IMG/VR virus record: IMGVR_UViG_3300045970_000794
Coordinates: 298,103-362,102 of that record
Length of the DNA stretch: 64,000 nt
Direction: 5' to 3' (one strand)
Part shown: positions 7,293 to 22,900 of the stretch, one piece after another
Layout of the letters: each line of letters opens with the position of its first letter
Numbering within the stretch: the first letter of the stretch is position 1
Made by a program: the position numbers and the translations under genes
Notes under the pieces: model-generated
The model's input: only the letters and a program-made list of their open reading frames with translations
Databases searched by the model: none
Told to the model about the DNA's origin: nothing

Positions 7293-7294
7293 GG

Positions 7295-9594
7295 TTATTG
7301 TTCTTTATGGAAGACAGTATTGCCGATGATGATAATATTATAACCATATTCTCTCATTCGATAGTCAGAGATACCCATAGCGGTTCTGAGTTGGTCGAAT
7401 TCGTCTTTAGTTAGTTGATGCACTTCACCTTCGAAAAATTTTGAAGGAAGTAGCTCCAATATTGGCATGCTTAATGCTTTTTGTAATGCTTCGTCTTTAG
7501 TCATATTGTTTAGTATTTAAGATTTTCTTTGAAAATTTAGTGAACCACTGGCAACGCAACCCCATACATGATATTTTTTACCATAAAATAGCGTAATATC
7601 ATCAATTAATGACCAATCCATATCGCAACCATTAACATTTCCTAGGATATTTGTACTAGAAGTTTTGGAACCGATTATCATATCCAATACCGCATCAATT
7701 GTATATGGTGCAATTTCACTATGGTAATGATAGTATTCACCCATTTTCAAGTGAACCAATTCAGTCATTATGTCATTCCTAATAATCTCATATTTTTTCT
7801 TCTCTTCACTAGTCATAGTCTATAGTATTTACCATTTACGTTTAAATTTATCAATAGCTTCACCGATACGATTAAAATTACCTAGTCGTTTGCCATCTGA
7901 ATCATCATATACACCACCACCACCATAATGATATGTTCTATTAGCGTCCTTATATTGTTGGGTGAACTCTTTAAATCCGAATAATTTTTCAAACCAATTG
8001 GGTGTAAATGTTACCTCAAAAATCAGTCGATTTGATGGTCTAACCTCCACTACTTGTTTAACATTAGTTATTTTCATTAGATTTCAGTTAATAATTGATT
8101 AATAGTCTCATCAATATCTTTACGAATACCTATGTTTTCTTCTAACATAGATTTAAAAAACTCTCTATAAACAACATCTGTCATTATGTTTTCTACGTTT
8201 ACCTCTGAGTAACCAAATTCTTTTAGGTTTTTTACACCACCCTCTAACAAATGTTTTCTAATACCTTTGCTTGTTGTTAAATCCATAATATTATTACTTT
8301 ACGATTTCTTTTAATCTTTTTAATTCAGCACGCAATGTTGCTTCCCATTGTGTAATATGATGTTTTTGCAATCTTATTGCTTCATCCTTATTGAGGGTGA
8401 ACCATTTATTTATTTTAGTAGGACCATAAAGAAAGACATATAATACATTTTCACTATCATCATAGTTATTATGATAATTCCAGCTACCGTTATTAGCTAT
8501 CAATCCTTTACATTCAATAATTTCCAAGTCATCATCTAAAGTGAAAACTGGGTATTCAGTATTAGCTTTCAATACTTTAAGATAGTCTTCAACTATTTGA
8601 CCTCTATTAGAGGGTAATATTACTTTATGTTTTAATTCCATTGGTATTATTTTATTTTAAGTAAATAATTTAATATTTAATCTCTTGGAATATTCTTTAA
8701 AATGAATGCTTTGTTTTCCTGTTGGCAGTGAGGACAATCAAGCCCGATATATGCATAAGGTCCATTAGGACATCCACATGGCATGTCACAATCGCATACG
8801 AAGTAATCAGTTCTAAATTCAGCATCGCCAGTGAATGGTTGACCACATTTGGAACATTCAAGTTCAAGAGTTATTTTTGTTATTTTATTTGCCATCGCTA
8901 TTTTTTTTAAAAGATAATTTACCAATCTTTTTAACTGGTGTACATACATCACACCTAGTATATTGTGTTTGTTCTAGGTCACCAGTATTATTAGGCTCAT
9001 GATTACCTTTACGTCCAATACCAATTGAGTAATTCTCACTTATTTTAATGAAAATATTTCCATTTGGTGACTCCCAAACATCATAAATGTCTAAATCTTT
9101 TTCTAGTTTCATGGCTATAGTATTAATTTTTTACAAAGATATATAAAATAAATTAAAAAACCTAATAAAATTATTTTTTTCTTGTGAAAAAATGTTGTAT
9201 TATTTGTAATGGGAATACCCAAGGGCCAATAAGTGCTAACCACCCATCATTTTTAGATGGTGGTGATTTAGTTTTGCTAGATAATCTATAATAATAGATA
9301 AAATAGATAGAAACAATTAAACCTATTAGGTAATAAGAAATTAAGTAAATCATAATTTTAAAACTTTAAATTGTTAATATTTTAAACGGTACCTAATGTA
9401 TCACCACAATCATTTACAATCCATATAACACCATTTTGATTATCATCAATGTATTTGATTCGATTTCTACACGGTTTATCAGTAAAGCCATCGGCGAACA
9501 TAAGCCCAAAGAAGAATAGGAATGCAATTGTTATTATCATTATTTTACCAGTTAATGTTAATCCATCACCGATATCAAAGCTTGATTTCTTCAC
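7295..9594 (-). other. run of short co-oriented hypothetical phage genes (7295-7504, 7517-7816, 7829-8077, 8077-8286, 8294-8641, 8677-8895, 8885-9112, 9171-9353, 9382-9594)
   Basis: Tightly tiled 60-115 aa minus-strand ORFs; no recognised families. Confidence 0.65.
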
Positions 9595-10048
9595 GTTCTT
9601 TTAGTCTTTTTTTATGTTTTAACATTCGTCTATATAATTCTTCAACAATATCGAATGATACCTGAGTACATCCAATAATAAACTTATCAATACCAAGGTT
9701 TACAATATGTTCACCAATTTTAATTGGAAGGTCTGGTACTTCATAACCTTCTGGCATATCTGATAATTCTAGATTTTTTACAGAATAACTTACGTTTGCA
9801 AGGTCATCAGTAGTTTTAACATCAGCATAATCAACTGGGTATGCACTGAAAAAGCCAAGTCTTCTTAACTCATCATGAGCTGATTCAATAGCATTTTGGC
9901 AAAGGTATATTTTTTTATGTTCAACATCATTGAAGATTAAACCATCTATCATCTTTGACCGATACATAGCAGTAAAATAGGTACCACTGGGTACTTTATC
10001 CCAATGTATCACATGAACAGTTTCTTCTGTTAAATATTTTTTATCCAT
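9575..10048 (-). CDS. hypothetical protein, tandem paralog of 10053-10496
   Basis: IHWDKVPSGT..GLIFND..LCQ..PDLPIKIG..IGCT. Confidence 0.7.
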   Translation of the reverse strand: MDKKYLTEETVHVIHWDKVPSGTYFTAMYRSKMIDGLIFNDVEHKKIYLCQNAIESAHDELRRLGFFSAYPVDYADVKTTDDLANVSYSVKNLELSDMPEGYEVPDLPIKIGEHIVNLGIDKFIIGCTQVSFDIVEELYRRMLKHKKRLKEREEIKL

Positions 10049-10052
10049 GGGA

Positions 10053-10496
10053 TTAATCTTTTTTATCAATTAAGTTATCAGCGATTTTACGTACCAAATC
10101 ATTGTCAATAGTTGTACAACCAACTTTGATGTGACCTTCCTTTATTTCAAGTTTATAGTCACCAATTCTTATTGGTAAGTCTGGTGTAACAAAACCTTCT
10201 TGTACATCAAGAATTTCAATATTTCTCATACTACCATAACCACCAAATTCCAATTCAGCAACAGTTCTTATAGTGTTATAATTTAAAGTGAATCCAAATT
10301 TATACCCTAAATTGTTTGGTGCATCTGAACCTTGAGCAAAATCTTGGCATAAAATTATCTTTTTATCATCTACATTATTAAATATAAGACCAGATATTGG
10401 GTTTTCGTTATAAATCGCTCTAAATTCAGTACCAGTTGGTACATTTTCCCATCTGATATATTCAGTAACTTGTTTTCTAATACAATTTTCATTCAT
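10053..10496 (-). CDS. hypothetical protein, tandem paralog of 9575-10048
   Basis: IRWENVPTGT..GLIFNN..LCQ..PDLPIRIG..VGCT. Confidence 0.7.
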   Translation of the reverse strand: MNENCIRKQVTEYIRWENVPTGTEFRAIYNENPISGLIFNNVDDKKIILCQDFAQGSDAPNNLGYKFGFTLNYNTIRTVAELEFGGYGSMRNIEILDVQEGFVTPDLPIRIGDYKLEIKEGHIKVGCTTIDNDLVRKIADNLIDKKD

Positions 10497-10508
10497 AATA
10501 TTATAGTT

Positions 10509-10721
10509 TTAAAGGTTAACGTATTTGTTAATAAATTTCATGTTGCACGTTATATTGGCTAATGCAAAACAAACTGGAATTGATATTAACATAAGGAACA
10601 TCCAGTTTGGATTCTCAGTAATTAACATAAGGATTGCTGGTGCAACTCCAATGATAAATGGTGTTAAAATACAAAATAATATCCAATAAAAAGAAACCAC
10701 TCCTAATAAAAATTTTTTCAT
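10509..10721 (-). CDS. small membrane protein
   Basis: Two hydrophobic stretches. Confidence 0.6.
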   Translation of the reverse strand: MKKFLLGVVSFYWILFCILTPFIIGVAPAILMLITENPNWMFLMLISIPVCFALANITCNMKFINKYVNL

Positions 10722-10723
10722 AA

Positions 10724-11122
10724 TTATTTTTTAAAGGTTAATAATATTACTTCAAGTATATGAATTCTTTTTAGAATATCTTCACTAGTATATGATGGAA
10801 ACCAGAAGCATGAGCTATTGAAGTGTGGGTCATAGTAATTAACATATGGTTTATAAGCCATTAGTTCAATGAGCCAGCAATCGTTACTCTCTAGGTCAAA
10901 TCTATTCTCATTAGCATCCCGCCAATTTACTATTGGTCTGGCACCGTATAGAATACCATTACAAAATCCTTCACCAAATACATCATTCTCTTTAAGTTTC
11001 ACTATAAGATATTTGAGCATTGCTTTATAGATTCGTTTCCTTAAAGCTGGAGTATTTTTAGTGCTTTTAGTTAGTCGTATCATTGCAAACGGCTTTATCT
11101 TTAAGTTGAAAATCCATTTCAT
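10724..11122 (-). CDS. hypothetical protein
   Basis: ORF with YKP..Y..FWF..KRI.IL motif shared with the adjacent frameshifted gene. Confidence 0.6.
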   Translation of the reverse strand: MKWIFNLKIKPFAMIRLTKSTKNTPALRKRIYKAMLKYLIVKLKENDVFGEGFCNGILYGARPIVNWRDANENRFDLESNDCWLIELMAYKPYVNYYDPHFNSSCFWFPSYTSEDILKRIHILEVILLTFKK

Positions 11123-11269
11123 TAATGATGGTTTTCAATATTTTAATTCTTTTTGTCATACCACGCTTATTATCATTGAACCAGTATCCAAAATAACCAC
11201 CATAATTATTTTTTGGCTTATATTTAAGAAGCCCAGTAAAAATAATACTCTTGATAAAAAATTTTTCAT
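11067..11269 (-). pseudogene. paralog of 10724-11122 with apparent 1-nt deletion in the A-run after ATG
   Basis: ATG-A5-T6; one extra A gives MKKFFIKS...KYKP..YWF..KRIKIL. Confidence 0.45.
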
Positions 11270-11271
11270 AA

Positions 11272-11508
11272 TTATTTAGTTTTATTACGTTTAGCACAGA
11301 ATTTACAATTACCTTTGTGAGCGGCCCAGTCATTGTTTTGACCATAAATAGAGCCAACATACTCACAGCCATCAATGACATATGTATTGATAGGAGTATA
11401 GTTAACAGAATAGCCACTAGGCTTTGTAGCCACATTATCCTCTTGCCGTTTTGGTAAACAAGATGTGATTAAGATTGATATAAGAATCAATGGAATGTAT
11501 CTTTTCAT
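11272..11508 (-). CDS. putative lipoprotein
   Basis: Signal peptide with lipobox LITSC. Confidence 0.65.
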   Translation of the reverse strand: MKRYIPLILISILITSCLPKRQEDNVATKPSGYSVNYTPINTYVIDGCEYVGSIYGQNNDWAAHKGNCKFCAKRNKTK

Positions 11509-11509
11509 A

Positions 11510-11854
11510 TTAGTTTACGATTTGTGATTTCTTTGCTACGATGATACTATCATTTTCTGATATGATGGATTCAATATTAATAACCTTACCAGTGTTTTGG
11601 TTATTGATGATAATAGTTGATTGGTGGCTTTTACCAACGCTATAGGTTGTTGAGTTAACAGCTCCATTAAGTACAGCAACTTTAACATAACTACCGCTAC
11701 CAGTTGACATATCATAAATTTTAAGACCTTTTAATTCTTGAGAAAGCTTTTCTTCAGCACCATTTAATGTATTTCTAGTGGTACCAGCATCTTCACAAGA
11801 AGAGAAAGCGATTGCTAATAATAATACACCTAAAACTAATGTAATTTTTTTCAT
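11510..11854 (-). CDS. putative lipoprotein
   Basis: MKK + hydrophobic core + AFSSC; start follows promoter at 11886. Confidence 0.7.
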   Translation of the reverse strand: MKKITLVLGVLLLAIAFSSCEDAGTTRNTLNGAEEKLSQELKGLKIYDMSTGSGSYVKVAVLNGAVNSTTYSVGKSHQSTIIINNQNTGKVINIESIISENDSIIVAKKSQIVN

Positions 11855-11863
11855 AGGATATAA

Positions 11864-11894
11864 GATTTTAAGTATTAATTTGATGCAAAGATAA
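11864..11894 (-). repeat. 31-bp exact repeat (promoter -7 box + leader), second copy at 15219-15249
   Basis: gattttaagtattaatttgatgcaaagataa identical at both sites. Confidence 0.85.
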
Positions 11895-11945
11895 ATAAAA
11901 TATTTTAATCTACCAAATAAAAATGCAATTATTTTTATAGCTATA

Positions 11946-12317
11946 TTATTTTTTATGTTTAACTTCACTTGCTCTACGTTTAATATCAGCATCAAGCCAT
12001 ATCATATTAGTATGTTTTATAATTGCCTCATTAACCCATTTAAGGACATCAGTTGGGTTATAATAATGCACATGATTAATATATTCGGATTCTATTTTAT
12101 CTTCAAACATTGCATTAGTACCAATTAAATAATCATCACACCAATCAACAACTTTAATTTTAAACCATAATATCTTAACGATTTTATACGCTTTTAGATT
12201 AACATAATGGCTTGTTGACCAATCTCTAGTCCAAAACTTACTACGCATGTGAGCTTTATAAAGAACACCATCAATTGTTGTGGTGAACGTCTTATTTTCT
12301 TCAATTAGTTCTTTCAT
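11946..12317 (-). CDS. hypothetical protein
   Basis: 123-aa ORF. Confidence 0.6.
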   Translation of the reverse strand: MKELIEENKTFTTTIDGVLYKAHMRSKFWTRDWSTSHYVNLKAYKIVKILWFKIKVVDWCDDYLIGTNAMFEDKIESEYINHVHYYNPTDVLKWVNEAIIKHTNMIWLDADIKRRASEVKHKK

Positions 12318-12318
12318 A

Positions 12319-12531
12319 TTAGCAATGTAGTACTAGACAAGATACCATCCAATAAATTAAAAAACAAATAGCTAAACATGCCGCAATACCAAACCAGCAT
12401 AATATACCAAACAAGGTATTTATAATGCGTTCCTCTAAATCTTCATCAAATGTATGTAATACACCGTTACCCATATAATAGGCCCCAACAAAGAATATTG
12501 CAATGCCTATAAACGTTAAAATTGCTACCAT
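12319..12531 (-). CDS. small membrane protein
   Basis: Two TM-like segments. Confidence 0.55.
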   Translation of the reverse strand: MVAILTFIGIAIFFVGAYYMGNGVLHTFDEDLEERIINTLFGILCWFGIAACLAICFLIYWMVSCLVLHC

Positions 12532-12542
12532 AGTTTTAATTT

Positions 12543-13460
12543 TTAAATTTTATTATTTCTTACTGAATCTTTTATTTCGATATAAATGGTTGATGCCATT
12601 GGATATTTCTTCGTGACATCAAGTTTGATTTGCTCAATAGTATCTTCAATATCATAAGCTACTTCATCATCTTCAATATCCAATGATAATAATAACATGA
12701 ACTGGTTTTTACCTATGAACATTGTTTGAATCTTATTGATATGTTTTACCATATGATATTGCCCGATAATATGTTTAATATCATTTCTTATTTCCCTCGG
12801 GGCACTCTCACCAATAATTAACTTTCTGAGCTCATTAGAGAGCGTATAAGCGATTATCATCAGAATTAGACCTACAACTATGGAACCGATTGCATCGAAC
12901 ACTGGAGAGACTGTAACAGCTAAAATTGTGGTGATGGCTACAACGATTAATCCGAATAATGCAACCATATCTTCTAGGATAATAACCAATAGGTTTGTAT
13001 CACTAGTATCAATGATTTTACGGAAGAATGAATCCTTACTGATTGTTTTGAATTGATTATAAGCAACTCTGAATGAGTTGAACTCTAAAATGATACCAAT
13101 ACCAAGAACGATGAAGGACCAATAAACATGATGTATTGGTTCTGGCTTTGATAGTTTTTCAATTCCCTCATAAAGCGAATAGAATCCACCAACAAAGAAT
13201 AATAGTATTGCTACCATGAATCCCCAGAAATATTCTTCCTTACCATAACCGAATGAATGTAGTTCGGTTGGAGCTTTAGATGTTCTTTTATTACCAATCA
13301 ACAAGAACACTTGATTGCAACAATCAGCTGTTGAGTGAATGGCTTCGGCCAACATAGCAGTACTAGTAGTAACGACAGCTACAACGAATTTTATGGCTGC
13401 GATGATTGCATTACCAATAAGTGCGACCATAACGGCCTTCATTGAATTAGGTTTAGACAT
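12543..13460 (-). CDS. cation diffusion facilitator (CDF) family transporter
   Basis: AMLAEAIHSTAD, HSFGYGKEEY, ILED, FDAIGS; 6 TM segments plus C-terminal domain. Confidence 0.9.
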   Translation of the reverse strand: MSKPNSMKAVMVALIGNAIIAAIKFVVAVVTTSTAMLAEAIHSTADCCNQVFLLIGNKRTSKAPTELHSFGYGKEEYFWGFMVAILLFFVGGFYSLYEGIEKLSKPEPIHHVYWSFIVLGIGIILEFNSFRVAYNQFKTISKDSFFRKIIDTSDTNLLVIILEDMVALFGLIVVAITTILAVTVSPVFDAIGSIVVGLILMIIAYTLSNELRKLIIGESAPREIRNDIKHIIGQYHMVKHINKIQTMFIGKNQFMLLLSLDIEDDEVAYDIEDTIEQIKLDVTKKYPMASTIYIEIKDSVRNNKI

Positions 13461-13764
13461 TTTGTTTAAGTATTTCTATTAGTTTAATACGCTTAGCTAG
13501 GAACCAAAGGCCACCTTGATTAGTAGGTCTTTTAAATTCTTCGAACTCTTCAATTTCAAGTTTAATCCAGACTCTACCTTTTTCGGATAGATGTGGTGCC
13601 ACTGGCTCTGATGTACAATGCCAAAACGGTCTCACTTTATAACCATTTGTTGGATGACATTCAGCTTCCATCCATTCATTAAATGGAAGGACCTTTGATT
13701 TATTAATGAAGAGTGGTGTTATATCACCATTCTTTTTTACTCTACAAAGTTTATATGCTAGCAT
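13453..13764 (-). CDS. hypothetical phage protein
   Basis: 103-aa ORF, translationally coupled. Confidence 0.65.
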   Translation of the reverse strand: MLAYKLCRVKKNGDITPLFINKSKVLPFNEWMEAECHPTNGYKVRPFWHCTSEPVAPHLSEKGRVWIKLEIEEFEEFKRPTNQGGLWFLAKRIKLIEILKQNV

Positions 13765-14102
13765 TATCTATATATTTTTCTAGTTTGACTATTAATACAT
13801 TTTGGGTTGATGCATTTGTATTCACCGAATATCCCTAGGAATCCGCTACGAACAACTGATGAGCCACATCTAATACAACATTTAGTACTACCTTCACGTT
13901 CCATTCTACTTAATGGTGGTTGTGGTGGTGGAGGTGCAACAATAAATGGTTTAATAACAATTGGTGTCTCTTGTGCCAGTTCTTTTTCAGCTGATTCAAT
14001 ATGTGCGCATAATGCGTAATACCCATTACATTTGGTACTGAAATCGCTTTGAATTTGAAAAGCGAACTGAATGAATTTTAGTGTTTCTAGGTGTAGTTTC
14101 AT
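13764..14102 (-). CDS. hypothetical protein with C-terminal zinc ribbon
   Basis: CIRC...CINPKC. Confidence 0.6.
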   Translation of the reverse strand: MKLHLETLKFIQFAFQIQSDFSTKCNGYYALCAHIESAEKELAQETPIVIKPFIVAPPPPQPPLSRMEREGSTKCCIRCGSSVVRSGFLGIFGEYKCINPKCINSQTRKIYR

Positions 14103-14285
14103 AATATTAGAGTAAAATTAATGAGTAAATGGTCCACATACTTAGTGATTGATAAATTAGTATTGTCCACATATGCTTCTTTATAAAATTATCATTATCC
14201 CCATATAGCATGAAGAGGCCATAAATCCAGCCAACTAACGGTATCAAATAGATTAATTTATTCATTTTATTTAGATTTTTAGTTA

Positions 14286-14615
14286 TTACTTTCTTGGAAT
14301 ATACTCACAATATGAGGTGTGTATACCATTGACACAACCACAATATTTACAATGGGTTTCAGCTTCAACCTCTTTAATAACATCGAATATTGTTAATTGA
14401 TTAGTTGGTTCTTCAGTGTTCTTTTTACAAGTACAATCACTGAATTTAAAGCTTTTAACCAAATTAACTTCACCGCCATTTAATACGTGTTCACTTAGGT
14501 TTTCCTTCCAGATAGTATCAGTATAACAATCTGGCTCACGACATGCGGCAAATGTTGCCCCACAATGACATTTCATTACTTGAATTCGATTCATGTTAAA
14601 GCTTTTTGTAGTCAT
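14286..14615 (-). CDS. Cys-rich hypothetical protein
   Basis: 109-aa ORF with several CxC/CxxC. Confidence 0.55.
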   Translation of the reverse strand: MTTKSFNMNRIQVMKCHCGATFAACREPDCYTDTIWKENLSEHVLNGGEVNLVKSFKFSDCTCKKNTEEPTNQLTIFDVIKEVEAETHCKYCGCVNGIHTSYCEYIPRK

Positions 14616-14796
14616 TTATACCAGTGACCATGAAGTATATCCCAAATAATATAGTTATGACCCATCTATGGGGTTCAACTGTTACATCAGTATTAAGTGT
14701 ACTATATATATATATACGCACCTAGTGTGATACATGATAAGCATCCTAGAAGGATTGAGCCTATTGCAAATATTTTATCTCTCATAATTTATTTAT

Positions 14797-15000
14797 TTAT
14801 TGAAGTTTACCTTTACAAATAACCATATCCAATTCATAGTTAGGTGGAAATTCACCTCGCCAATCACCATCAACGTTATGTTGACCTATATCAAAGCGAA
14901 CTGAATCGGCTATGATACCTTTGATTCTAAGATGGTCTTTAATTATATCAGAAATTTCTTCTGGAGTTAATCTAACTGTTATTTCTTTTTCGATTTCCAT
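14797..15000 (-). CDS. hypothetical protein
   Basis: 67-aa ORF. Confidence 0.55.
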   Translation of the reverse strand: MEIEKEITVRLTPEEISDIIKDHLRIKGIIADSVRFDIGQHNVDGDWRGEFPPNYELDMVICKGKLQ

Positions 15001-15035
15001 GACTATTTTGCTATTGATGTGTCTTTATCTTTAAG

Positions 15036-15218
15036 TTAAAAGATTTTGTTTTTAATATCACTTATAACATATAAAACAAGGCCAATGGCCATAGCAATTA
15101 AGAATATGACTGACTTAGTGTAGAAAATTTCAAAGTCATTGGCGTTAGCATTAACTAATGCTTGGATATAAAACCCAATAAAGAATGCCATTATGAATTT
15201 TGCGATATGTCTTAACAT
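15036..15218 (-). CDS. small membrane protein
   Basis: Two TM segments; follows promoter at 15241. Confidence 0.55.
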   Translation of the reverse strand: MLRHIAKFIMAFFIGFYIQALVNANANDFEIFYTKSVIFLIAMAIGLVLYVISDIKNKIF

Positions 15219-15289
15219 GATTTTAAGTATTAATTTGATGCAAAGATAATACAAATATTTTTAATAACCAAATTTTTTGTGAATTATTT

Positions 15290-15472
15290 TTAAAATGGTA
15301 ATATTTCTTTTGATTGTTCTTTTTCGTATTCCTTTTTGAATCGTTCAAATTCAGCATCAAATCCATTTCTAATAATGACAGCTGGATTGAAATTCTTAGT
15401 TTTCAACCAAGCAATTTTTCCCATTTGCTCAGCTGAAAACCTAATTGATTGAACTTGAGATTTTTGTTTCAT
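15290..15472 (-). CDS. putative ribbon-helix-helix DNA-binding protein at head of cassette array
   Basis: VQSIRFS (strand) + helix + NPAVIIR helix pattern. Confidence 0.5.
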   Translation of the reverse strand: MKQKSQVQSIRFSAEQMGKIAWLKTKNFNPAVIIRNGFDAEFERFKKEYEKEQSKEILPF

Positions 15473-15516
15473 ATTTGTAATACAATTATAACAGCAATAA
15501 GTAAGTTAGTGAGCAT

Positions 15517-15780
15517 TTAAGCATCACTATATTTAATAAACATAGTATCCATGAATTTTTTAACATCATTTAATTCACCTTGATAACATCTTCCCATACC
15601 ACAAATCGTATAAATTGGAAATTCGTTATCTTTTACATTTTCAAATATATTCAAGTTATGCTCTATTACAATCTTATAATCCCTATATGTTTCAATTTCT
15701 TCAATTTTCCCTTTAACAAAACGCTCACTAACATCGTGTATAGCACATTGCTGTTCATTTTTCAAATTATCTTTTTCCAT
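15517..15780 (-). CDS. cassette 1 hypothetical protein
   Basis: Starts inside site 1 (QCAIHDVS encoded by the arm). Confidence 0.7.
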   Translation of the reverse strand: MEKDNLKNEQQCAIHDVSERFVKGKIEEIETYRDYKIVIEHNLNIFENVKDNEFPIYTICGMGRCYQGELNDVKKFMDTMFIKYSDA

Positions 15781-15843
15781 ATTATTAAATTTAGTATTTC
15801 AAATTAAGTTCTCGTTGGCAACGTGCTATACACGCAGCCGTTA
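15729..15843 (+). repeat. attC-like site 1
   Basis: TAAC-at-CGTGTATAGCACATTGC ... GCAACGTGCTATACACG-cagcc-GTTA. Confidence 0.85.
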
Positions 15844-15851
15844 TGTTTAAT

Positions 15852-16016
15852 TTAATTTTTTAACCGCAATTTATCTCCCACCCATTCAAGTTCTATCATT
15901 TCATCATGTTTTCCCTTGTTAATAATATCCAGTGCTGTATCAACATCAGATAAATTGCTAACTACTTTCACCATTTCATCAAGAGTCATACATTTTAACA
16001 TTTCAAGTTTTTCCAT
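15852..16016 (-). CDS. cassette 2 hypothetical protein (54 aa, not in ORF track)
   Basis: MEKLEMLKC...GDKLRLKN*; fills the cassette. Confidence 0.6.
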   Translation of the reverse strand: MEKLEMLKCMTLDEMVKVVSNLSDVDTALDIINKGKHDEMIELEWVGDKLRLKN

Positions 16017-16047
16017 AAGTTTATCTATTAAAAATTAAACTAAAACA

Positions 16048-16160
16048 TAACAACAAATATAAGTTATTATTTTCAGTGTTCCAAATTAAATTATCTGTTT
16101 ATTTATACGTTTGTTTTTTAATTAAGTTTCAGTTATAACAACTTATATTTGCAACCGTTA
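16048..16160 (+). repeat. attC-like site 2
   Basis: TAAC-aa-CAAATATAAGTTATTAT ... ATAACAACTTATATTTG-caacc-GTTA. Confidence 0.85.
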
Positions 16161-16196
16161 GCAGCTATTAAAACAGTACGCTCGTTCCTCGCCTGC

Positions 16197-16457
16197 TAAC
16201 ATCGAATAAGAAAAATAAAAATTACTACTGTTGTGGTTCATCGAGTGGTGGTGGTTTTAAATACCATTTTCCGTTATCATCAACAAAAAAACTTTCAGGC
16301 TTCATCTGTTCATATCCCCAAGAACAAAAACCTTTGCAGTTTTTATTTTCGCATACATTATTAAATTCTCCCCATTCCTGTCCACACAATACACATATAA
16401 GTTTTTTTTCGTGTTCCATATACCGTAATTTTTACATTTTCTTATTCGCAGCCGTTA
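16197..16457 (+). repeat. attC-like site 3 (loop contains a whole gene)
   Basis: TAAC-at-CGAATAAGAAAAATAAAAATTAC ... GTAATTTTTACATTTTCTTATTCG-cagcc-GTTA. Confidence 0.8.
16225..16419 (-). CDS. small zinc-finger-like protein nested in site 3
   Basis: CVLC...CENKNC. Confidence 0.65.
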   Translation of the reverse strand: MEHEKKLICVLCGQEWGEFNNVCENKNCKGFCSWGYEQMKPESFFVDDNGKWYLKPPPLDEPQQ

Positions 16458-16670
16458 GGCGTAATTAAAAGTAATCCTAACTTTAGCCTTAAATTCTCTA
16501 TATCCGTTTTCGTTTTCAATAGTCATTTCTTGTAATATGTCCTGAATGAATATCAGTGCATCATCTGTTATTTCAGTTCCTTTAGGGTAAGTCTTTGAAT
16601 AACTACGCCTAACACCACCTATATTTAATTGCTGGCTATCTGCGTTATTAAAGGTCTGTTCGTTGTTCAT
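16455..16670 (-). CDS. cassette 4 hypothetical protein
   Basis: Starts in site 4 loop (QLNIGGVR); its stop TAA is the TTA of the cassette's GTTA. Confidence 0.7.
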   Translation of the reverse strand: MNNEQTFNNADSQQLNIGGVRRSYSKTYPKGTEITDDALIFIQDILQEMTIENENGYREFKAKVRITFNYA

Positions 16671-16734
16671 AATTTCGTGTAATTTGATAGTTTAGTATTT
16701 CAAAATCAGCAACTAAACATAGCTGTAACCGTTA
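16610..16734 (+). repeat. attC-like site 4
   Basis: TAAC-ac-CACCTATATTTAATTGCTG ... CAGCAACTAAACATAGCTG-taacc-GTTA. Confidence 0.85.
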
Positions 16735-16741
16735 GCAACAA

Positions 16742-16951
16742 TTAGTGCTGCCCATACCTCAAATGAATGTTATCATAATCTGTATCGTGATAAGCACCGT
16801 TCTCTTGTTTATGTTTCTTTATACATTGATATAAGTATATTTCGGTTAATCCTACCAAAGAACAATCACCTTTATCCCAACTATTATACAGTTGTTTAAT
16901 CTCATCATCGTTCAAATCTAATAAACTTTCTATTGTGTTCTTTTCATCCAT
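16742..16951 (-). CDS. cassette 5 hypothetical protein
   Basis: ATG at 16951 (MDEKNT). Confidence 0.6.
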   Translation of the reverse strand: MDEKNTIESLLDLNDDEIKQLYNSWDKGDCSLVGLTEIYLYQCIKKHKQENGAYHDTDYDNIHLRYGQH

Positions 16952-16966
16952 AAATCTAACTGTTGC

Positions 16967-17052
16967 TAACAAGCAATATATGTAATTGCCTATTAAGGTT
17001 TGTAAAATTTTTAAATTTTGTGCAAGGCAACTACATATATTGCCAACCGTTA
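16967..17052 (+). repeat. attC-like site 5
   Basis: TAAC-aa-GCAATATATGTAATTGCC ... GGCAACTACATATATTGC-caacc-GTTA. Confidence 0.85.
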
Positions 17053-17059
17053 GGTTCAA

Positions 17060-17353
17060 TTAAATTATTGTTTTGATTTTATTTAGATAATCAATATATC
17101 GAGAAGATGAACCGCTACCATACAATTTTTCAGCTTTCTCAGACATACCATATAAAGATATTAAAAAATAATCACCATATTCAGATGCTTTGTTCCTAAA
17201 TCCCCACATTTCATGTTGTCTTATCTGAAATTCATCTTCAGTGAGGTTATCCATATCAATAAATAATTTATCGTATGCTTCCCAAAATTGTGTCATCACA
17301 ATTCTAACTTCTTCTTTTAATTCTTGTGAAGTTGTTTGTTCTCTTATATTCAT
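17060..17353 (-). CDS. cassette 6 hypothetical protein
   Basis: 97-aa ORF filling the cassette. Confidence 0.7.
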   Translation of the reverse strand: MNIREQTTSQELKEEVRIVMTQFWEAYDKLFIDMDNLTEDEFQIRQHEMWGFRNKASEYGDYFLISLYGMSEKAEKLYGSGSSSRYIDYLNKIKTII

Positions 17354-17389
17354 ATTTTTTAATTTGTAAAATAATTATTTAACTAAACC

Positions 17390-17437
17390 TAACAAATGAT
17401 AAACAACATTAAAACGATTGTTTATCATCGGACGTTA
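17390..17437 (+). repeat. attC-like site 6 (minimal, 48 bp)
   Basis: TAAC-aa-ATGATAAACAA-cattaaaacga-TTGTTTATCAT-cggac-GTTA. Confidence 0.8.
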
Positions 17438-17458
17438 TGGCTCATTAAAACGAAGCCA

Positions 17459-17950
17459 TAACAGCAAATATAACCAATGCTGTCAGTGCTTCGATTTAAG
17501 TTTTGCGATTAAAAGTTTTTAAAAATTGCCATCGCACTTAAAAAGTTTCAAGTATTTTTCCTGTTGGTTCAACAAAATCAATTACACTTGTTTCACCATT
17601 TTCTTTTTCTACACCTATTTGCCCAGTTAACCTAGAATTAATAGTTTCAAATTTATGCAATTCGCATCTAAAAGAAAATGTATCTTTTAACTTGGTTTGC
17701 AACTCAACATTCCAACCGTCATTGGATTGGTCAAACAAATGGTTCAATGCAAATTCTTTAACAATCAATTTAACCATTTTCATTCTTAATGATTTTTTAC
17801 TTTTTACTTTCATACTTTTAATTTTAAATTTATATAAATATAATGTTTTTATTTAAGATAATCAATATTTTCTCACGCTATTTTTAAAAACTTTTTTGCG
17901 GTGTTTCAATTAAGCATTAGTGTTAGCACTGGTTATATTTGCAGCCGTTA
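17459..17950 (+). repeat. attC-like site 7 (loop contains a whole gene and an inner 16-bp inverted repeat)
   Basis: TAAC-ag-CAAATATAACCAATGCT ... AGCACTGGTTATATTTG-cagcc-GTTA. Confidence 0.8.
17538..17813 (-). CDS. hypothetical protein nested in site 7
   Basis: 91-aa ORF. Confidence 0.65.
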   Translation of the reverse strand: MKVKSKKSLRMKMVKLIVKEFALNHLFDQSNDGWNVELQTKLKDTFSFRCELHKFETINSRLTGQIGVEKENGETSVIDFVEPTGKILETF

Positions 17951-17953
17951 TGG

Positions 17954-18223
17954 TTAATTACCAATTCCAGCTTTGCATTTTGGACATTTAATATAACTAT
18001 CATGATTGTATCCGCAAAATGAACACTTACGTAATGGTAACTCAACCATAACATTAGATAAATCCAATTTTTTGATGTCATTAATTAAGCACAAAACTTC
18101 GTCTGCCCTTATATTATACGTTAGTGCATGGATATAATTATTTGCTTCGCTATTTATTTTTTCGTTATCTTTATAGTCACGAAGTTTTTTTTCCAATTCA
18201 TTAATTATTTAGTCTTTTTTCAT
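17954..18223 (-). pseudogene. cassette 8 gene with C-terminal zinc ribbon; in-frame TAA at codon 5
   Basis: ATG AAA AAA GAC TAA ATA ATT AAT GAA TTG...; could alternatively initiate at TTG 18196. Confidence 0.5.
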
Positions 18224-18261
18224 ATAATTCATTTTAAACTGTATTTATCTGAGTACCGTTA
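18049..18261 (+). repeat. attC-like site 8 (degenerate arms)
   Basis: TAAC-at-TAGATAAATCCAATTT ... AAACTGTATTTATCTG-agtacc-GTTA. Confidence 0.7.
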
Positions 18262-18543
18262 GTGGCAATTTTCTATGAACAGTCTAAACTTCTTACCATC
18301 TTTGGAAATAAATTCGATTGAGTTAGTATTTTGTTGTAAATTATCGTCTAACTCTTTTTGCTGTTGCATTTCTATTATAATTTTTCCGTAATCATGAATT
18401 GTCGCACATTCTTGTGGCTCATCGTTATCGAATTTAAACATAAGCCTTCCAGTTTGGTTAGCAAGTTTAAAACTGCCACTAACATCAGCTATATTCAATG
18501 CCGAGTTCTGTGGCGTAATTGAGTTTTGTTCTTCGTTTTTCAT
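18259..18543 (-). CDS. cassette 9 hypothetical protein
   Basis: Starts in site 9 loop (ALNIADVS); stop within GTTA. Confidence 0.7.
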   Translation of the reverse strand: MKNEEQNSITPQNSALNIADVSGSFKLANQTGRLMFKFDNDEPQECATIHDYGKIIIEMQQQKELDDNLQQNTNSIEFISKDGKKFRLFIENCH

Positions 18544-18603
18544 TTTATCTGTTTATTAAATTTTGAAATACAAAATTGGCACTAAATATAGCTGTAAACA
18601 TTA
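18480..18603 (+). repeat. attC-like site 9 (core G replaced by A)
   Basis: TAAC-at-CAGCTATATTCAATGCC ... GGCACTAAATATAGCTG-taaac-ATTA. Confidence 0.8.
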
Positions 18604-19575
18604 TACCCCATTTAAGAGCGACCCGAAAATGTGAGCGATTATATCAACAGTCCATCCGTTTCCGAGCATTTTTTTTGATTGGCTTTCTGAAACAATATCA
18701 GTAAAGTAATTTTCGGGAACTGTTTGTAATCTGCAATACTCTTTCAAAGTGTAATATCTAAATGGTAGCTTGTTTTTAAAAGCGTCCTTATGCCTACCTA
18801 TTGGCATTGTAGTTAAAACATTGTCTTTTTCAACAGTAGTTAGGCAGTTGCTTTTATTAGTGTTAGTTGCTCTTACTTCCAAGCATTGCGTAATCGGTAC
18901 ATCTTTGTTGTAGTCATCTCTTACACCTCGCTCATTCAATCTTCTACCTAAAATAGTAGCTTTATTCAACCTTCGCCCTCTTATTGCACTTGGGTTAATA
19001 AAATCGTCAGTTTCAAGTATATCAATAAGGTTTATTGCTTTGTCGGTTGGCTGTGTAATTTCAAAGTTTGCCCAATACAAACGAACCCTATTTTGTGCAG
19101 TAACTAAGCTACTGTTAATCGCAACAGGTTCAACCCCTAAATACTCGCTAATTACTTGCTCATATTCTTTTTTCATTACTACATTTTCAAGTAACCAGTA
19201 TTTAGGTTTCAATTCTTTAACCAATCTAACAAACTCAAAAAATAGTTTGCTTCGAGGGTCATCAAAGTTTAACTGTTTGCCACTAAAACTAAATCCTTGG
19301 CATGGGCTACCTCCAATCAATAAATCAACTTTAGGTAAGTCTTTTGCAAATACTTTAGTTACATCGCCTAATTGTATTGTTTTCGGGTAGTTGGTTTGTG
19401 TTACTTTAATAGCGTGTTTATCAATCTCACTCGCAAAGTAGTTATCATATTCAATCCCAACTCTATTAAGTGCTATTTGTCCACAACTCATTCCATCAAA
19501 AAGAGAAAGAACAGAAGAAAAACGGGGCATAACACCGTGTATAGGTAATGTGGGGTTTTGTGGTAATTCAATCAT
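18601..19575 (-). CDS. dcm: DNA (cytosine-5)-methyltransferase (cassette 10)
   Basis: LSLFDGM, EID, GGSPCQGFS, LENV, QNRVR, LGNGW motifs. Confidence 0.92.
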   Translation of the reverse strand: MIELPQNPTLPIHGVMPRFSSVLSLFDGMSCGQIALNRVGIEYDNYFASEIDKHAIKVTQTNYPKTIQLGDVTKVFAKDLPKVDLLIGGSPCQGFSFSGKQLNFDDPRSKLFFEFVRLVKELKPKYWLLENVVMKKEYEQVISEYLGVEPVAINSSLVTAQNRVRLYWANFEITQPTDKAINLIDILETDDFINPSAIRGRRLNKATILGRRLNERGVRDDYNKDVPITQCLEVRATNTNKSNCLTTVEKDNVLTTMPIGRHKDAFKNKLPFRYYTLKEYCRLQTVPENYFTDIVSESQSKKMLGNGWTVDIIAHIFGSLLNGV

Positions 19576-19653
19576 TTGTTCTCGTATTTAAGTTATTACT
19601 ATTTTGACAGGGTAGTGCTTCGTATTCCCACACTACCCATACACGAAACGTTA
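19530..19653 (+). repeat. attC-like site 10
   Basis: TAAC-ac-CGTGTATAGGTAATGTGGG ... CCCACACTACCCATACACG-aaac-GTTA. Confidence 0.85.
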
Positions 19654-19664
19654 TAAGTAATTTA

Positions 19665-19946
19665 CTAAATGTTTGGATGATTAGTAAAACATTTATTGCA
19701 TTGTTGATTATTTCTACTTATTTGAATTAATTCACCACCACAATCACATTTATTAAACATACTTATAACAGTAGGTATATTCAAATTTTTAACTCGTTCT
19801 TGTTCGTATTTAATACCTTCATCAAATGCTTCCAAAAACCAACCAAACCATTCGTCTTTAGCCATTTCACCACGCATATCTTTTGTTGGTAAATCGTCAA
19901 TTATCTTATTAATTATTTTATTTTTATCCATTTTAATTTCCTCCAT
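19665..19946 (-). CDS. cassette 11 protein with C-terminal zinc ribbon
   Basis: NLNIPTVI motif across half-site at 19766; CDCGG...CNKC. Confidence 0.65.
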   Translation of the reverse strand: MEEIKMDKNKIINKIIDDLPTKDMRGEMAKDEWFGWFLEAFDEGIKYEQERVKNLNIPTVISMFNKCDCGGELIQISRNNQQCNKCFTNHPNI

Positions 19947-22900
19947 TGTTAAGTAATGATTTTATGCCCTCATCTTTTAAAAGTAAGAGCATAATATCTA
20001 ATTCATTTTCTGTTATTGTTTCTTCGTCAAGTTCTGCTAATGACAAATACAATCTACGTTTTAAATCTAAAATTTCATCCATGTTAAATATCACCTTTAA
20101 GCCACAATTTATAATCATCTTCTGTCATTCCCAAATATGCTGATAAACTTAAAGTACTATCAGAATTATGCCATTCATCAATCTTATCATCAATGGTATC
20201 ACCAATGGTTTTAACATATTTAATTTTTAGATTCATTTCAATGGTGTGTTCTACCTGAGTAATCGCCCAGTCAATTTTATCAACATCCATTTGGTCAACA
20301 GCATCATTAATTGGTAAATCCAAATAATAATTAGAATACATTCTTTTAAACATTAAATGCTGCTCTTCAGTGCATTTAGCTAGAAGGTCTTTTAGAATAG
20401 TCTTAGCAGCTTTTATTAAAGTTTCGTTTTTCATATTATTTAAATAAAAGATTAAATAAATAATAGACTGGAGTTAGGAATGCGGGTGTTACATACAACC
20501 ACAATAAAACAGATACCCACCCTTCTTTATTGAATTTATACCTATCAAAAATATTAATATTTTTATTTTCGTCTTCTAGTGCCCACATAATTACGAAGCA
20601 ACTAACTACTAATGTATATCCCCACATATTATTTTATATTAAATTATTAAATATCATTTTCATCATCAATCACCCACCACATGAAACCACAGGCCAATCC
20701 AATTACCACTACTTGTATAAAAATTTCCATCATTATTTTATATTAACCAAAGTTTGTTAAAGTAATATATCTGATTATCAGTCAGATTCTTAACCCATTC
20801 ATCAAAATAGATATGATACTTAATCGAATTGTTTTCATACCATTCATATCTCAAATATTGATATAGCCTATCATTCATACTAATACAAATCAAAATCATC
20901 ACCAACAATTATCCACCATAGGACAATCAATACACCCATAAACATCATTAATTCCATGAGTTAAACTGTATTAATATTAAATTTAATAAGAATTACCATC
21001 TTCAACCAATCGTAAAACATTTCATCAGTGAACGATGCAGTCTTATCATCATTAGTTCTATAAACCGATTGACCATTTACTCTATAGAATAGGTCATAAT
21101 AGATTTTTAGAGTAACACCATCTTTACTGAAAACAACGTTGTTGAACTCACCGTCAGTTGGTGAATACGCTATACCGTATTTCTCTAAGGTAGTAACCAA
21201 TTTATTTATTGTATGCTCAAGTTTAGTAATTGGTGCCATTTTTATATATAATAAAGGTGAATATATTGTTTTTTATATGTTACCATTCCACTGCTATAGT
21301 GATGAAAATGAAATTCTCTAGTTATATCATCCTTATAAAGTTGATATGCGTAATCGACATCCATTAATTCTTTAGTTCCCATAATAAGATTAAATTAATT
21401 TCTACAAAGATAATACAAATAAGTTAATAAAACAAATTTTCTATCAAATATTTTTCATCTAAAATTTTGCGTGGGATTCCATGGCAGTCTAACCAATAAT
21501 GTATGATAATGTCAGTGAAGGGACTAATATTCCCAAACTCACCTTGCATTCTTCCATTTTTATCTGGAACCCTACCCATAAGTTGGTCATCTGTTAGTAA
21601 ATTCTTACGTTCTTCCCACGTCAATTCTCTATAATAATCCTCTTCATTCACTGAACTTATGACTTAACCTCAAATAAATCTTCGATATCATCATCATAAA
21701 TCCAATTAAGGGCTTCTTCAGCTCCACGATAGATAAGGTTATCTTCATCCATTTCTTCCCAATCACCTTCATTAATGTCCTCAAGGTTAGTTGAACCATC
21801 AAGAATTGATATCTTAGCATCAATGATTAAATGGTTAGGGTTACGAAATGTACTATACTCTGGTAGCCAAGTTTTCATGGCGGTTAAGCCATCAATTTGT
21901 CTTTGAATTGCTGCTTCTGTTCTCATTTTTGAAACGTTTATTAATAATACTTAAAACTTTATATAATATGAACAATACTAAAACTGAATCTACTATTGGC
22001 CATAAAATTGATAATATAATATAAGGTGTGACTCCATCGTCTTCATAATCATCTACATCGTAAGTGCTTTTAGCATTACTATTACCAATATTAATACTCC
22101 TAATAACCATTAGGAATATAAAGGTAACTACGAACCCGATAATATATGTTACTATGTATGTCATCACTCATTTAATTCTTCAATTATTGTATATTGTACT
22201 GGCGTTGATAATTCGATTTTATAACCATTAGTATTTCCACCATCGAATGTGTAAATGTTATCATAAAATAAATATGCGCCATCATCGATTTTGCAATCAT
22301 CACAATTAATTATTTCATCAAAAAGAAACCAACTGGTAGCACCACCAGTTAGCATTACTCTAACACGAAAAATCTTCTTTCTTCGATTCAAATATTCCGT
22401 TCGGAAGAAACCATTCATTACATGGGATTTGATTTGGTCAGCAGTTAAGCTTTCCTCACGATTTTCGGAACGATATAAACCATCATCACCTTTAAGCCAT
22501 AGTGAATCCCCATTCCTAGTTTTTGTAATGTCACGATATCCTATTTTATCCATATTTCCCATAATTTAATATTTTTATTATAATTTTTTCCAAGTAGAAT
22601 CTGGAATTTCATCTGGTTTTCTAAGATTATTGATAATTCCAACTTTACCATTATCCAATTCAAACCAAATAAATTTATTTTCTATGAATATACGAACAAT
22701 TTTATTAACGCCACTATCATATCCATATGAATATGTTCCACCCCATTCTATAGTATCACCAACACATATTTTACCATAAACAATGTGATTAGCTTCATTA
22801 ATACTATCTATACCCATTATTTTCCAATCTAATTTATCTTTCATAATTAAATTTTTACCAAACAAACCAAATAAAATACAAAGGTCCACCTATTACCATC

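Follow-up and report, generated by a model that had tools for sequence, protein, structure and literature searches.

An integron-like gene cassette array in a phage of Bacteroidota

A 362-kb phage of Bacteroidota contains an array of 11 small gene cassettes that is built like a bacterial integron, and related phages carry the same arrays next to their own small tyrosine recombinase. The array was found in the 64-kb stretch of DNA analyzed here (the window; 64,000 nucleotides of IMG/VR record IMGVR_UViG_3300045970_000794), in which it occupies positions 15489-19790. Each cassette begins with 8-10 nt that are the reverse complement of its last 8-10 nt, and the cassettes are separated by 10 structured hairpin sites that are all located on one strand. 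An earlier note had described these units and inferred that they are mobile cassettes integrated from circles at G|TT by a tyrosine recombinase, with no integrase nearby and a non-canonical site geometry. Every test that we could run agrees with this inference. However, the system is not a canonical integron. The recombinase is neither a host enzyme nor IntI but a phage-family Xer-like enzyme, and the cassette genes are antisense to the canonical integron orientation. No description of the system was found in the literature searched.

Anatomy of the cassette array

All 11 start/end reverse-complement pairs exist, and the complementarity is perfect over 8-10 nt for ten of them, whereas the ATTATACCCC/GGGGCATAAC pair contains two G-to-A mismatches. 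The ten hairpin sites lie between the units at 15729-15843, 16048-16160, 16197-16457, 16610-16734, 16967-17052, 17390-17437, 17459-17950, 18049-18261, 18480-18603 and 19530-19653. All of them are on the + strand and contiguous, and the five other weak hits in the 64 kb are what shuffled sequences give (about 1-10 per window). The two cores of one site pair only over TAAC/GTTA, while the two ends of one cassette pair over 8-10 nt. This property is not restricted to the present array. Among 378 cassettes from many phages, 78% exhibit at least 8 bp of own-end pairing, compared with 4% for the adjacent end and 4% for permuted partners, and the R box is never longer than 10 bp.

The site consists of TAAC, 2 nt, a 12-bp stem, a conserved mismatch, 4-6 bp, a loop, 4-6 nt and GTTA. 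The arms, which the note had described only as differing from site to site, are not free-form. They contain 12 bp followed by an invariant A opposite C/G/A and then 4-6 bp, with near-invariant T5-A6 and a mostly T/A position 7. The 2-nt/5-nt spacer geometry recognized in the note is general across sites. Moreover, the sites fall into size classes of about 44, 75, 84, 111 and 121 nt, and these classes are 75-100% conserved between phages.

The left boundary of the array (15489-15504, +) is a degenerate site (TAAC-AG-10 nt-) that has no hairpin and does not match the attI-like ATATATAATA motif found beside integrases. Cassette 1 (15505-15839, +) has R' at 15505-15514 and R'' at 15723-15732, and its site (15729-15839) contains L'' (15735-15751), L' (15818-15834) and the spacer CAGCC. 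Its ORF (15517-15780, - strand) starts inside the site loop. Cassette 2 (15840-16156, +; R' 15840-15848, R'' 16043-16051) carries an ORF at 15852-16016 (-) and a site at 16048-16156 with a non-coding loop and the spacer CAACC. This site is 75-82% identical to sites in 8 other loci, with homology bounded by TAAC and GTTA. Cassette 3 (16157-16453, +) has a body of only 44 nt (R' 16157-16164, R'' 16193-16200), and its ORF (16225-16419, -) lies wholly inside the 222-nt site loop, which is flanked by arms at 16203-16214 and 16437-16448. Cassette 4 (16454-16730, +; R' 16454-16463, R'' 16604-16613) contains a site of the 121-nt class (16610-16730) and an ORF (16455-16670, -) that uses the TAA of the core as its stop codon.

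Cassette 5 (16731-17048, +; R' 16731-16740, R'' 16961-16970) has an ORF at about 16742-16951 (-) and a site of the 84-nt class (16967-17048) that is up to 91% identical to sites in other phages. Cassette 6 (17049-17433, +; R' 17049-17056, R'' 17386-17393) has an ORF at 17060-17353 (-) and a minimal 44-nt site (17390-17433) with the loop CATTAAAACGA, and this site class is 95-100% identical in more than 20 loci. The body of cassette 7 (17434-17946, +) is 'empty' and consists of R' (17434-17442), the loop CATTAAAACGA and R'' (17454-17462), while its ORF (17538-17813, -) lies inside the 443-nt site loop between arms at 17465-17481 and 17925-17941. Cassette 8 (17947-18257, +; R' 17947-17955, R'' 18044-18052) contains the weakest site (18049-18257) and an ORF at 17954-18196 (-) that has a TTG start and is possibly disrupted. 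Cassette 9 (18258-18599, +; R' 18258-18267, R'' 18474-18483) contains a site of the 121-nt class (18480-18599) and an ORF (18259-18543, -) whose stop codon is in the core. Cassette 10 (18600-19649, +) carries a C-5 cytosine DNA methyltransferase gene (18601-19575, -; Pfam DNA_methylase, E = 6e-41) and a site at 19530-19649. Its R' is mutated to ATTATACCCC, compared with GTTATGCCCC expected from R'' (19524-19533). Finally, cassette 11 (19650-19790, +; R' 19650-19659, R'' 19760-19769) forms the right boundary, at which only an L''-like arm (19772 onward) is present without a 3' arm, and its ORF (19665-19946, -) runs out of the array.

The recombinase and cassette mobility

The same sites form arrays in about 100 viral contigs. 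They were identified in about 30 of 120 viral contigs fetched with a 16-nt site motif and also in the huge phage LR756500.1. The only conserved neighboring gene encodes a 268-aa tyrosine recombinase (Pfam Phage_integrase, 6e-36, plus Phage_int_SAM_4) in which the catalytic residues R, K, H-x-x-R, H and Y are conserved. Of 66 recombinase loci with upstream DNA, 62 have sites within 3 kb upstream in one fixed orientation, and the array starts about 50 nt upstream of the recombinase gene. Site density is 0.78/kb in the upstream region, 0.03/kb downstream and 0.014/kb on the other strand. An attI-like motif is conserved beside 37 integrases.

Cassettes move as units bounded at GTT. Cassettes that are 100% identical are found in unrelated arrays, and homology ends at ...C|GTTA on both sides. 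The shared unit comprises R', body, R'', its own site and the spacer. Three of the arrays (L123, L124 and L134) differ by blocks of whole cassettes. Noticeably, ten cultured isolates of Polaribacter phage Freya differ only by whole cassettes inserted or lost next to the recombinase gene. Isolates 1, 2, 5, 6, 8, 9 and 10 share attI ...ataggggt|GTT but have different first cassettes. They form a nested series plus one internal single-cassette loss, and every breakpoint is at |GTT.

The folding of the sites is strand-asymmetric. Across 467 sites, A.C mismatches on the + strand, that is, G.T on the bottom strand, reach 10-25% at four stem positions and 70% at position 13, whereas G.T on the + strand is 1% or less. 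The bottom strand is the more stable one in 272 of 274 reconstructed circle junctions, and the circle junction is more stable than the array context (-20.6 vs -15.4 kcal/mol). RNAalifold finds the same structure, with compensatory changes in 18 of 24 pairs. However, the folded strand is also the mRNA-sense strand, and the G.T/G.U asymmetry and the covariation would therefore arise equally from an RNA structure and do not by themselves prove a single-stranded DNA substrate.

Proposed mechanism and alternative explanations

How are the cassettes exchanged? We propose, with high confidence, that the region is a cassette array of an integron-like site-specific recombination system that is native to phages of Bacteroidota. 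Read on the + strand, each cassette comprises GTTR plus 6 variable nt (R'), the body with a gene on the opposite strand, the complementary 6 nt plus YAAC (R''), 2 nt, a 12+1+6-bp hairpin and a 4-6-nt spacer (CARCC). The hairpin loop spans 11 to more than 400 nt and holds the gene's start in about a third of cassettes. In the proposed mechanism, the dedicated Xer/IntI-clade recombinase excises cassettes as circles, in which R'' meets its own R' to give a two-helix folded site. The recombinase then re-inserts the circle at an attI-like site (...ATATATAATA|GTTA) about 50 nt upstream of its own start codon, and it can also recombine two cassette sites. Strand exchange falls within the conserved GTT, and the folded partner is the bottom strand, which here is the gene-sense strand. 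The activity of this enzyme on the sites is inferred from adjacency rather than from experiment, and the existence of circles and the use of a single-stranded DNA substrate resolved by replication, as in integrons, are likewise inferred. The recombinase might also, or instead, serve lysogeny, as its describers assumed.

It is possible, although only tentatively supported, that the array in the window was built by this system but is now an immobile relic that persists as a block of accessory genes. The window has no recombinase, and the only copy seen on this contig, of which 76 kb of the 362 kb was seen, is a truncated 116-aa N-terminal fragment beside a second small array. No full-length copy from this contig is among the best 80 of 97 hits. 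In addition, the core of cassette 10 is mutated to ATTA, the last site lacks its 3' arm, and the left end lacks the attI-like motif, which makes activity in this genome doubtful. No close relative of this particular array was found. On the other hand, ten of the eleven cassettes keep perfect own-end complementarity and all ten sites keep intact stems, and nothing would maintain these features in a dead array for long. Integrase-distal arrays also co-exist with an intact integrase in other contigs (for example, L005 and L007 on one contig), and action in trans is therefore plausible. Thus, the array is either mobilized in trans, for example by a co-infecting relative, or is a recent relic.

It is very unlikely that the hairpins are primarily RNA elements on the sense transcript, such as terminators, processing sites or elements for translational control of the enclosed start codons, and that shuffling is a by-product of homologous recombination between conserved repeats, as appears to have been proposed for the promoter-early stem-loop (PeSL) cassettes of T4-type phages (Arbiol et al. 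2010). The G.U-compatible wobbles on the sense strand, the start codons and leaders in many loops and the 75-100% identity within site classes would fit such a view. However, homologous recombination would not create or preserve 10-nt complementarity between the start of a cassette and its own far end. Furthermore, it would not place breakpoints at the 3-4-nt GTT core next to non-homologous attI sequence or explain a recombinase fixed in position and orientation at the array end in 62 of 66 loci. Still less likely are small non-autonomous elements moved by a single-strand HUH transposase (IS200/IS605, REP/RAYT type) or Xer-dif modules using host XerC/D because, although hairpins with conserved flanking tetranucleotides resemble IS200/IS605 ends and the recombinase is Xer-like by sequence, no HUH gene is conserved near the arrays, the sites are 44-125-nt strand-asymmetric hairpins instead of 28-bp duplex dif sites, and the units sit head-to-tail in one array next to one enzyme and are not scattered through the genome.

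Comparison with known systems and cassette cargo

Like bacterial integrons, the system has a recombinase gene at one end, transcribed away from the R''-to-R' direction of the site, an adjacent attI-like site and an array of head-to-tail one-gene cassettes. The sites have the layout R''(YAAC)-L''...L'-R'(GTTR), the first bases of a cassette complement its own R'', exchange occurs within GTT, and the bottom strand, in the same geometric sense, folds better. New cassettes appear at the attI end, and site classes are conserved within the lineage, as are the Vibrio VCRs of sedentary chromosomal integrons. However, the recombinase is about 48 residues shorter than VchIntIA in the region where the IntI-specific domain probably lies, and it scores below the NCBIfam integron-integrase cut-off (151 vs 265 bits). 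R boxes are 10 bp, spacers are 2 nt and 4-6 nt, and the L stem is 12+6 bp, with its two segments separated by a conserved G.T wobble where canonical attC sites have extrahelical bases. The loops may hold the gene start or a whole gene. Noticeably, 369 of 377 cassette genes run opposite to the canonical direction, and 69 of the 369 genes called use the core TAA as their stop codon. Recognizable Bacteroidota-type promoter boxes precede only about 11% of cassette genes.

The best sequence matches of the recombinase are Pyrococcus abyssi XerA (4a8e, E = 4e-48) and the XerA, XerD and XerC models, and its architecture of a SAM-like N-terminal domain plus a catalytic domain is the same as that of Xer recombinases. 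XerCD recombination of the folded single-stranded attP of CTX phage may provide a precedent for this kind of substrate. However, the scores are below every curated Xer cut-off, the sites are not dif-like duplexes, and the apparent function is cassette exchange in an array rather than dimer resolution or phage integration. PeSL cassettes similarly appear to sit in hyperplastic phage regions of small orphan genes, each bracketed by conserved stem-loop-containing repeats and shuffled between related phages, but their shuffling appears to be attributed to homologous recombination without a dedicated recombinase.

The array in the window is an integrase-less cluster of recombination sites and in this respect resembles CALINs (clusters of attC sites lacking integron-integrases), including those reported in phages by Qi et al. 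2023 (PMC9892861). Interestingly, the P12002L 'CALIN' with two methyltransferase genes in that study is made of sites of this very family. P12002L_attC1 (NC_028924 30005-30059) is a 44-nt-class site with the CATTAAAACGA loop, and P12002L has at least 9 more sites of this family that standard tools did not report. Those authors treated the sites as ordinary attC sites picked up from bacteria and did not link them to a phage recombinase, and in their assay P12002L_attC1 was the one site of six that IntI1 did not recombine.

The system is carried by phages of 44 to 462 kb. Where recognizable, the cargo is dominated by DNA methyltransferases and other counter-defense-type genes. The 150 largest cassette proteins include 9 DNA methyltransferases, Tad3, RNA ligase and RNA-repair domains, ADP-ribosyltransferases and MazG, in addition to the Dcm of the window. 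The arrays apparently serve these phages as a swappable store of accessory and anti-defense genes.

Cassette array and its linkage to a recombinase

Window region 15000-20400 was read directly, and a script recovered every reverse-complement pair of the form GTTA+N...N+TAAC that had been listed in the earlier note. A mismatch-tolerant search for TAAC, 2 nt, stem, loop, stem, 4-6 nt and GTTA identified ten sites, all of which are on the + strand and contiguous between 15729 and 19653, and the few other hits in the 64 kb are at the level of shuffled sequence. The array has 11 cassettes and is bounded by a degenerate hairpin-less site at the left end (15489-15504) and by a half-site at the right end (19766 onward). 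All ORFs in the region are on the - strand. Noticeably, the window's stems share one design that was not recognized in the earlier note, consisting of 12 bp, then a position that is A opposite C on the + strand, then 4-6 bp. Genes often start inside the hairpin loop and read through L'' and R'' into the body, and in cassettes 3 and 7 the whole gene sits in the loop, leaving a 'body' of only 44 or 29 nt. When a gene starts in the site loop, as at 15723-15780, 16604-16670, 18474-18543 and 19524-19575 (- strand), the L'' arm, the 2-nt spacer and R'' are translated in one shared frame, which gives similar N-termini (...I-x-[D/G]-V-[S/R/M]...) on unrelated proteins.

The array is not an isolated feature of this genome. 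The only similar DNA among deposited phage genomes was the 462-kb metagenomic phage LR756500.1, which has the same kind of array. A megablast search of window 1-25000 against phage genomes gave only an 81-nt site match to it. A 16-nt motif from the 3' half of a site retrieved 120 viral contigs, of which about 30 carry arrays. Clustering of all ORFs of at least 100 aa around 29 arrays gave a protein of about 268 aa at one end of the array as the only widely shared neighbour. This protein is a tyrosine recombinase that combines Phage_integrase with a SAM-like N-terminal domain, and its catalytic R, K, HxxR, H and Y residues are conserved. A profile search found 97 viral loci with this recombinase, and 80 were retrieved. 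In 62 of the 66 loci with at least 1 kb of upstream DNA, sites lie within 3 kb upstream of the start codon, always in the same orientation. Site density is 0.78 per kb in this interval, 0.03 per kb downstream and 0.014 per kb on the other strand. Between the start codon and the first cassette, about 50 nt upstream of the integrase start, a conserved attI-like motif (...ATATATAATA|GTTA) was found in 37 loci.

The window itself contains neither this motif nor the recombinase. No recombinase was found by Pfam analysis of the 20 largest window ORFs or by a tblastn search of the window with the recombinase. However, the same contig (IMG/VR 3300045970_000794, 362,102 bp), of which the window is the last 64 kb, carries a 116-aa N-terminal fragment of the recombinase followed by an attI-like motif and a three-cassette array (locus L047, contig 6,060-18,238; the feature itself at L047 9024-11100, contig coordinates about 15.1-17.2 kb). 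This small array is about 60 kb from the window's array if the genome is circular. Its first cassette is 94% identical to cassettes in two other phages, again bounded at the cores. The R' of its third cassette (GTTATAAGTA) does not match its R'' (TACGCCTAAC), and both boxes occur in the window's array.

In the window's array, cassette 10 has a mutated core and the distal site is incomplete, but all stems and ten of eleven own-end pairings are intact. Other contigs have one integrase-adjacent array plus integrase-distal arrays (loci L007 and L005). In contig 3300042879_005260 (loci L122/L007/L005), for example, one genome has an integrase-adjacent array plus a second array of 18 sites about 7.5 kb downstream of the integrase, and multiple arrays per genome are therefore normal. 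We thus rate the possibilities that the window's array is mobilisable in trans or is a recent relic as about equally likely. An attempt to find close relatives of this particular array through the neighbouring cation-diffusion-facilitator (cation efflux) transporter gene (12543-13460) yielded four other large viral contigs with homologues at 56-73% identity, but these contigs are not syntenic and have no array there.

Cassette exchange and site structure

The cassette model was tested in three ways. First, in 378 non-identical cassettes, the start pairs with the cassette's own R'' over at least 8 nt in 78%, in contrast to 4% for the physically adjacent R''/R' and 4% for permuted partners. The pairing never exceeds 10 nt, and position 11 is always A opposite C or A. 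Second, cassettes that are 93-100% identical occur in otherwise unrelated arrays, with homology starting at |GTTA and ending at ...C|GTTA of the next cassette. The unit is therefore R', body, R'', own site and spacer, which is exactly the integron-type unit. Moreover, three related contigs differ by blocks of whole cassettes.

Third, a cultured system shows the same kind of variation. The nearest cultured relatives of the recombinase are in the flavobacterial phages Ingeline, Freya, Leef and Danklef. The ten isolates of Polaribacter phage Freya range from 43,978 to 48,920 bp, and the seven distinct records that we compared differ only next to the recombinase. All share ...ataggggt|GTT, and the first cassette, inserted exactly at attI|GTT, differs between isolates 1, 2, 5, 6, 9 and 8/10. 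Each shorter isolate's first cassette is found deeper in the longer ones, preceded there by a site spacer, which gives the nested series 1 < 2 < 5 < 9 < 10. Isolate 6 has a private cassette at attI, and isolate 8 equals isolate 10 minus one internal 902-nt cassette. The breakpoints map to within the shared GTT. Interestingly, the describers of these phages read the integrase as a lysogeny marker and did not mention cassettes.

Across 467 non-identical sites, the L stem is 12 bp, with T5 and A6 near-invariant and position 7 mostly T or A. An invariant + strand A follows at position 13, opposite C in 70%, G in 19% and A in 3%, and is followed by six more pairs. The 5' spacer is A+N, and the 3' spacer is mostly CAACC, CAGCC or CAAAAC. 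The sites are strongly strand-asymmetric: A.C and C.A mismatches on the + strand, which become G.T pairs on the - strand, reach 10-25% at four stem positions, while G.T on the + strand is 1% or less. With DNA parameters, the - (bottom) strand is the more stable in 272 of 274 reconstructed circle junctions, with means of -20.6 and -17.1 kcal/mol, and the circle junction is more stable than the array context (-15.4 kcal/mol). RNAalifold on 60 bottom-strand sites of the 121-nt class predicts the same structure, with compensatory changes in 18 of 24 pairs and a G.U pair at position 13 in 57 of 60. However, because the bottom strand is also the mRNA-sense strand, these data do not separate a DNA structure from an RNA structure. 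An Rfam scan of the region gave only chance-level hits and no known RNA family, and no tRNA was found in the window.

'Empty' cassette bodies, which consist of R', CATTAAAACGA and R'', occur in the window (17434-17462) and in loci L067, L129, L139 and L181. The same 11-nt loop closes 80 of 83 minimal 44-nt sites. Genes can sit in either of the two loops, which may bear on how cassettes originate.

Comparison with integrons and other recombination systems

The system appears to work like an integron but differs from the canonical IntI-based integron in several defining respects. An attI-like site lies next to the integrase gene and receives cassettes, and the cassette sites have YAAC/GTTR cores with a cassette start that is complementary to its own R''. 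The recombinase, however, is not IntI. Its best structural relatives by sequence are P. abyssi XerA (4a8e), VchIntIA (2a3v) and XerD. Its best NCBIfam model is XerA, and its scores are below every curated cut-off, including XerA (184 vs 220), XerD (156 vs 330) and the integron integrase TIGR02249 (151 vs 265 bits). Against VchIntIA the alignment breaks into two pieces, and the phage protein has 29 residues where IntI has 77, in a region where the IntI-specific additional domain is likely to lie. The site geometry also departs from that of canonical attC, which has a 7-bp R box, extrahelical bases, spacers of about 5 nt on both sides and a length of 57-141 nt. Here the R box is 10 bp, the spacers are 2 nt and 4-6 nt, the L stem is 12+6 bp with a conserved G.T wobble, and loops reach more than 400 nt. 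Finally, canonical cassettes are promoterless and oriented for expression from Pc at the attI end, whereas in 369 of 377 cassettes here the longest ORF is on the opposite (bottom) strand, co-directional with the recombinase.

A published assay bears on recognition by IntI. Qi et al. 2023 ran IntegronFinder and HattCI on phage genomes and tested six predicted sites with IntI1, and the single failure was P12002L_attC1. That sequence, taken from their primer table, is a 44-nt-class site of this family with the CATTAAAACGA loop and lies at NC_028924 30005-30059 between two methyltransferase cassettes. Polaribacter phage P12002L was reported as carrying a two-site CALIN, but it has at least nine more sites of the family, giving at least ten around methyltransferase and Mom-like genes (NC_028924 29175-40946), and no recombinase. 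This closest prior work saw two sites in one phage and filed them as ordinary attC, and full-text literature searches found no description of a phage-encoded recombinase with such arrays.

The window's array, with ten sites at 15729-19653 and no tyrosine recombinase in the 64-kb window, fits the definition of a CALIN for this site family, although not for canonical attC. An assignment to Xer/dif modules is not supported because the sites are 44-125-nt hairpins with strand asymmetry rather than 28-bp duplexes with two 11-bp arms and a 6-bp centre, and because the recombinase scores below the XerC, XerD and XerA cut-offs. IS200/IS605 or REP/RAYT (HUH) elements are likewise not supported, as the tyrosine recombinase was the only widely shared neighbour among ORFs of at least 100 aa around the 29 arrays.

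Cargo, distribution and implications

The median cassette length is 380 bp and the median ORF length is 87 aa. Of the 369 genes called on the bottom strand, 130 start inside the site and 69 use the TAA of the core as their stop codon. About 390 sequence clusters were found among 462 cassettes, and most of these families are unknown. Of the 150 largest cassette proteins, few match Pfam, and the matches are nine DNA methyltransferases, Tad3 (a Thoeris inhibitor family), RNA ligase, 'Swiss army knife' RNA-repair domains, ADP-ribosyltransferases, MazG, PAPS reductase and GNATs. In the window's array, only the Dcm methyltransferase (18601-19575) is recognizable, and Pfam and PHROGs searches with the ten small cassette proteins gave no significant family. 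A Bacteroidota -7 box (TAnnTTTG) is enriched upstream of cassette genes (about 11% vs 3% in shuffles) but is absent from most cassettes, and we therefore do not claim that every cassette has its own promoter of this type.

Outside the array, the window encodes genes typical of huge phages, including a full sigma-70 factor, an RNase R/II-type exoribonuclease and a ribose-phosphate pyrophosphokinase (41841-42716, 45309-47234 and 58892-59932). It also encodes three DUF723/treble-clef zinc-finger proteins and a GIY-YIG endonuclease (37345-38439, 55305-56177, 57743-58642 and 51319-52146), all likely homing-endonuclease-type genes, and two adjacent ice-binding-like proteins, the first with an fn3 domain (60176-62640). 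A reverse transcriptase (52726-53733, RVT_1, E = 9e-21) is flanked by two paralogous ORFs that share 117-nt and 61-nt repeats at 80-84% identity (52230-54436). It is not obviously a diversity-generating retroelement; the flanking 117-nt repeats belong to the paralogous ORFs and the mismatches are not adenine-specific in a simple ungapped comparison.

The contigs range from 4 to 462 kb, and the cultured members infect Polaribacter and Cellulophaga. A scan of 185,579 species genomes with the recombinase profile gave only 19 loci, mostly Bacteroidota MAG contigs with 0-3 sites. The system therefore appears to be mainly viral and centred on Bacteroidota.

We consider it probable that phages of Bacteroidota, from 44-kb siphoviruses to phages of more than 400 kb, carry their own integron analogue, comprising a small Xer-like recombinase (whose action on the sites is inferred from its adjacency to the arrays), an attI-like site and arrays of self-contained cassettes with a distinct two-helix folded site. 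In this reading, the system is active on the timescale of a single bloom, since co-isolated Freya strains differ only by cassettes, and serves as a shufflable bank of counter-defence and other accessory genes, the mirror image of bacterial integrons banking anti-phage defences. The 'empty' cassettes and the genes sitting in either of the two loops may also show how new cassettes are made, which is unsolved for integrons. The arrays provide a ready-made catalogue of candidate anti-defence genes, in which the recognizable families are enriched in DNA methyltransferases, a Thoeris inhibitor family, RNA-repair enzymes and ADP-ribosyltransferases. Polaribacter phage Freya and its host are in culture and already show natural cassette polymorphism, which makes the mechanism directly testable, and the recombinase and its roughly 44-nt minimal site could also become a compact recombination tool. 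Integrons are regarded as a bacterial and, more recently, archaeal invention, and phages were thought to carry at most stray fragments of them. A phage-native system with its own non-IntI recombinase would account for part of the 'hyperplastic' orphan-gene regions of large phages and would also show that folded-site cassette capture arose or diversified outside the IntI family.
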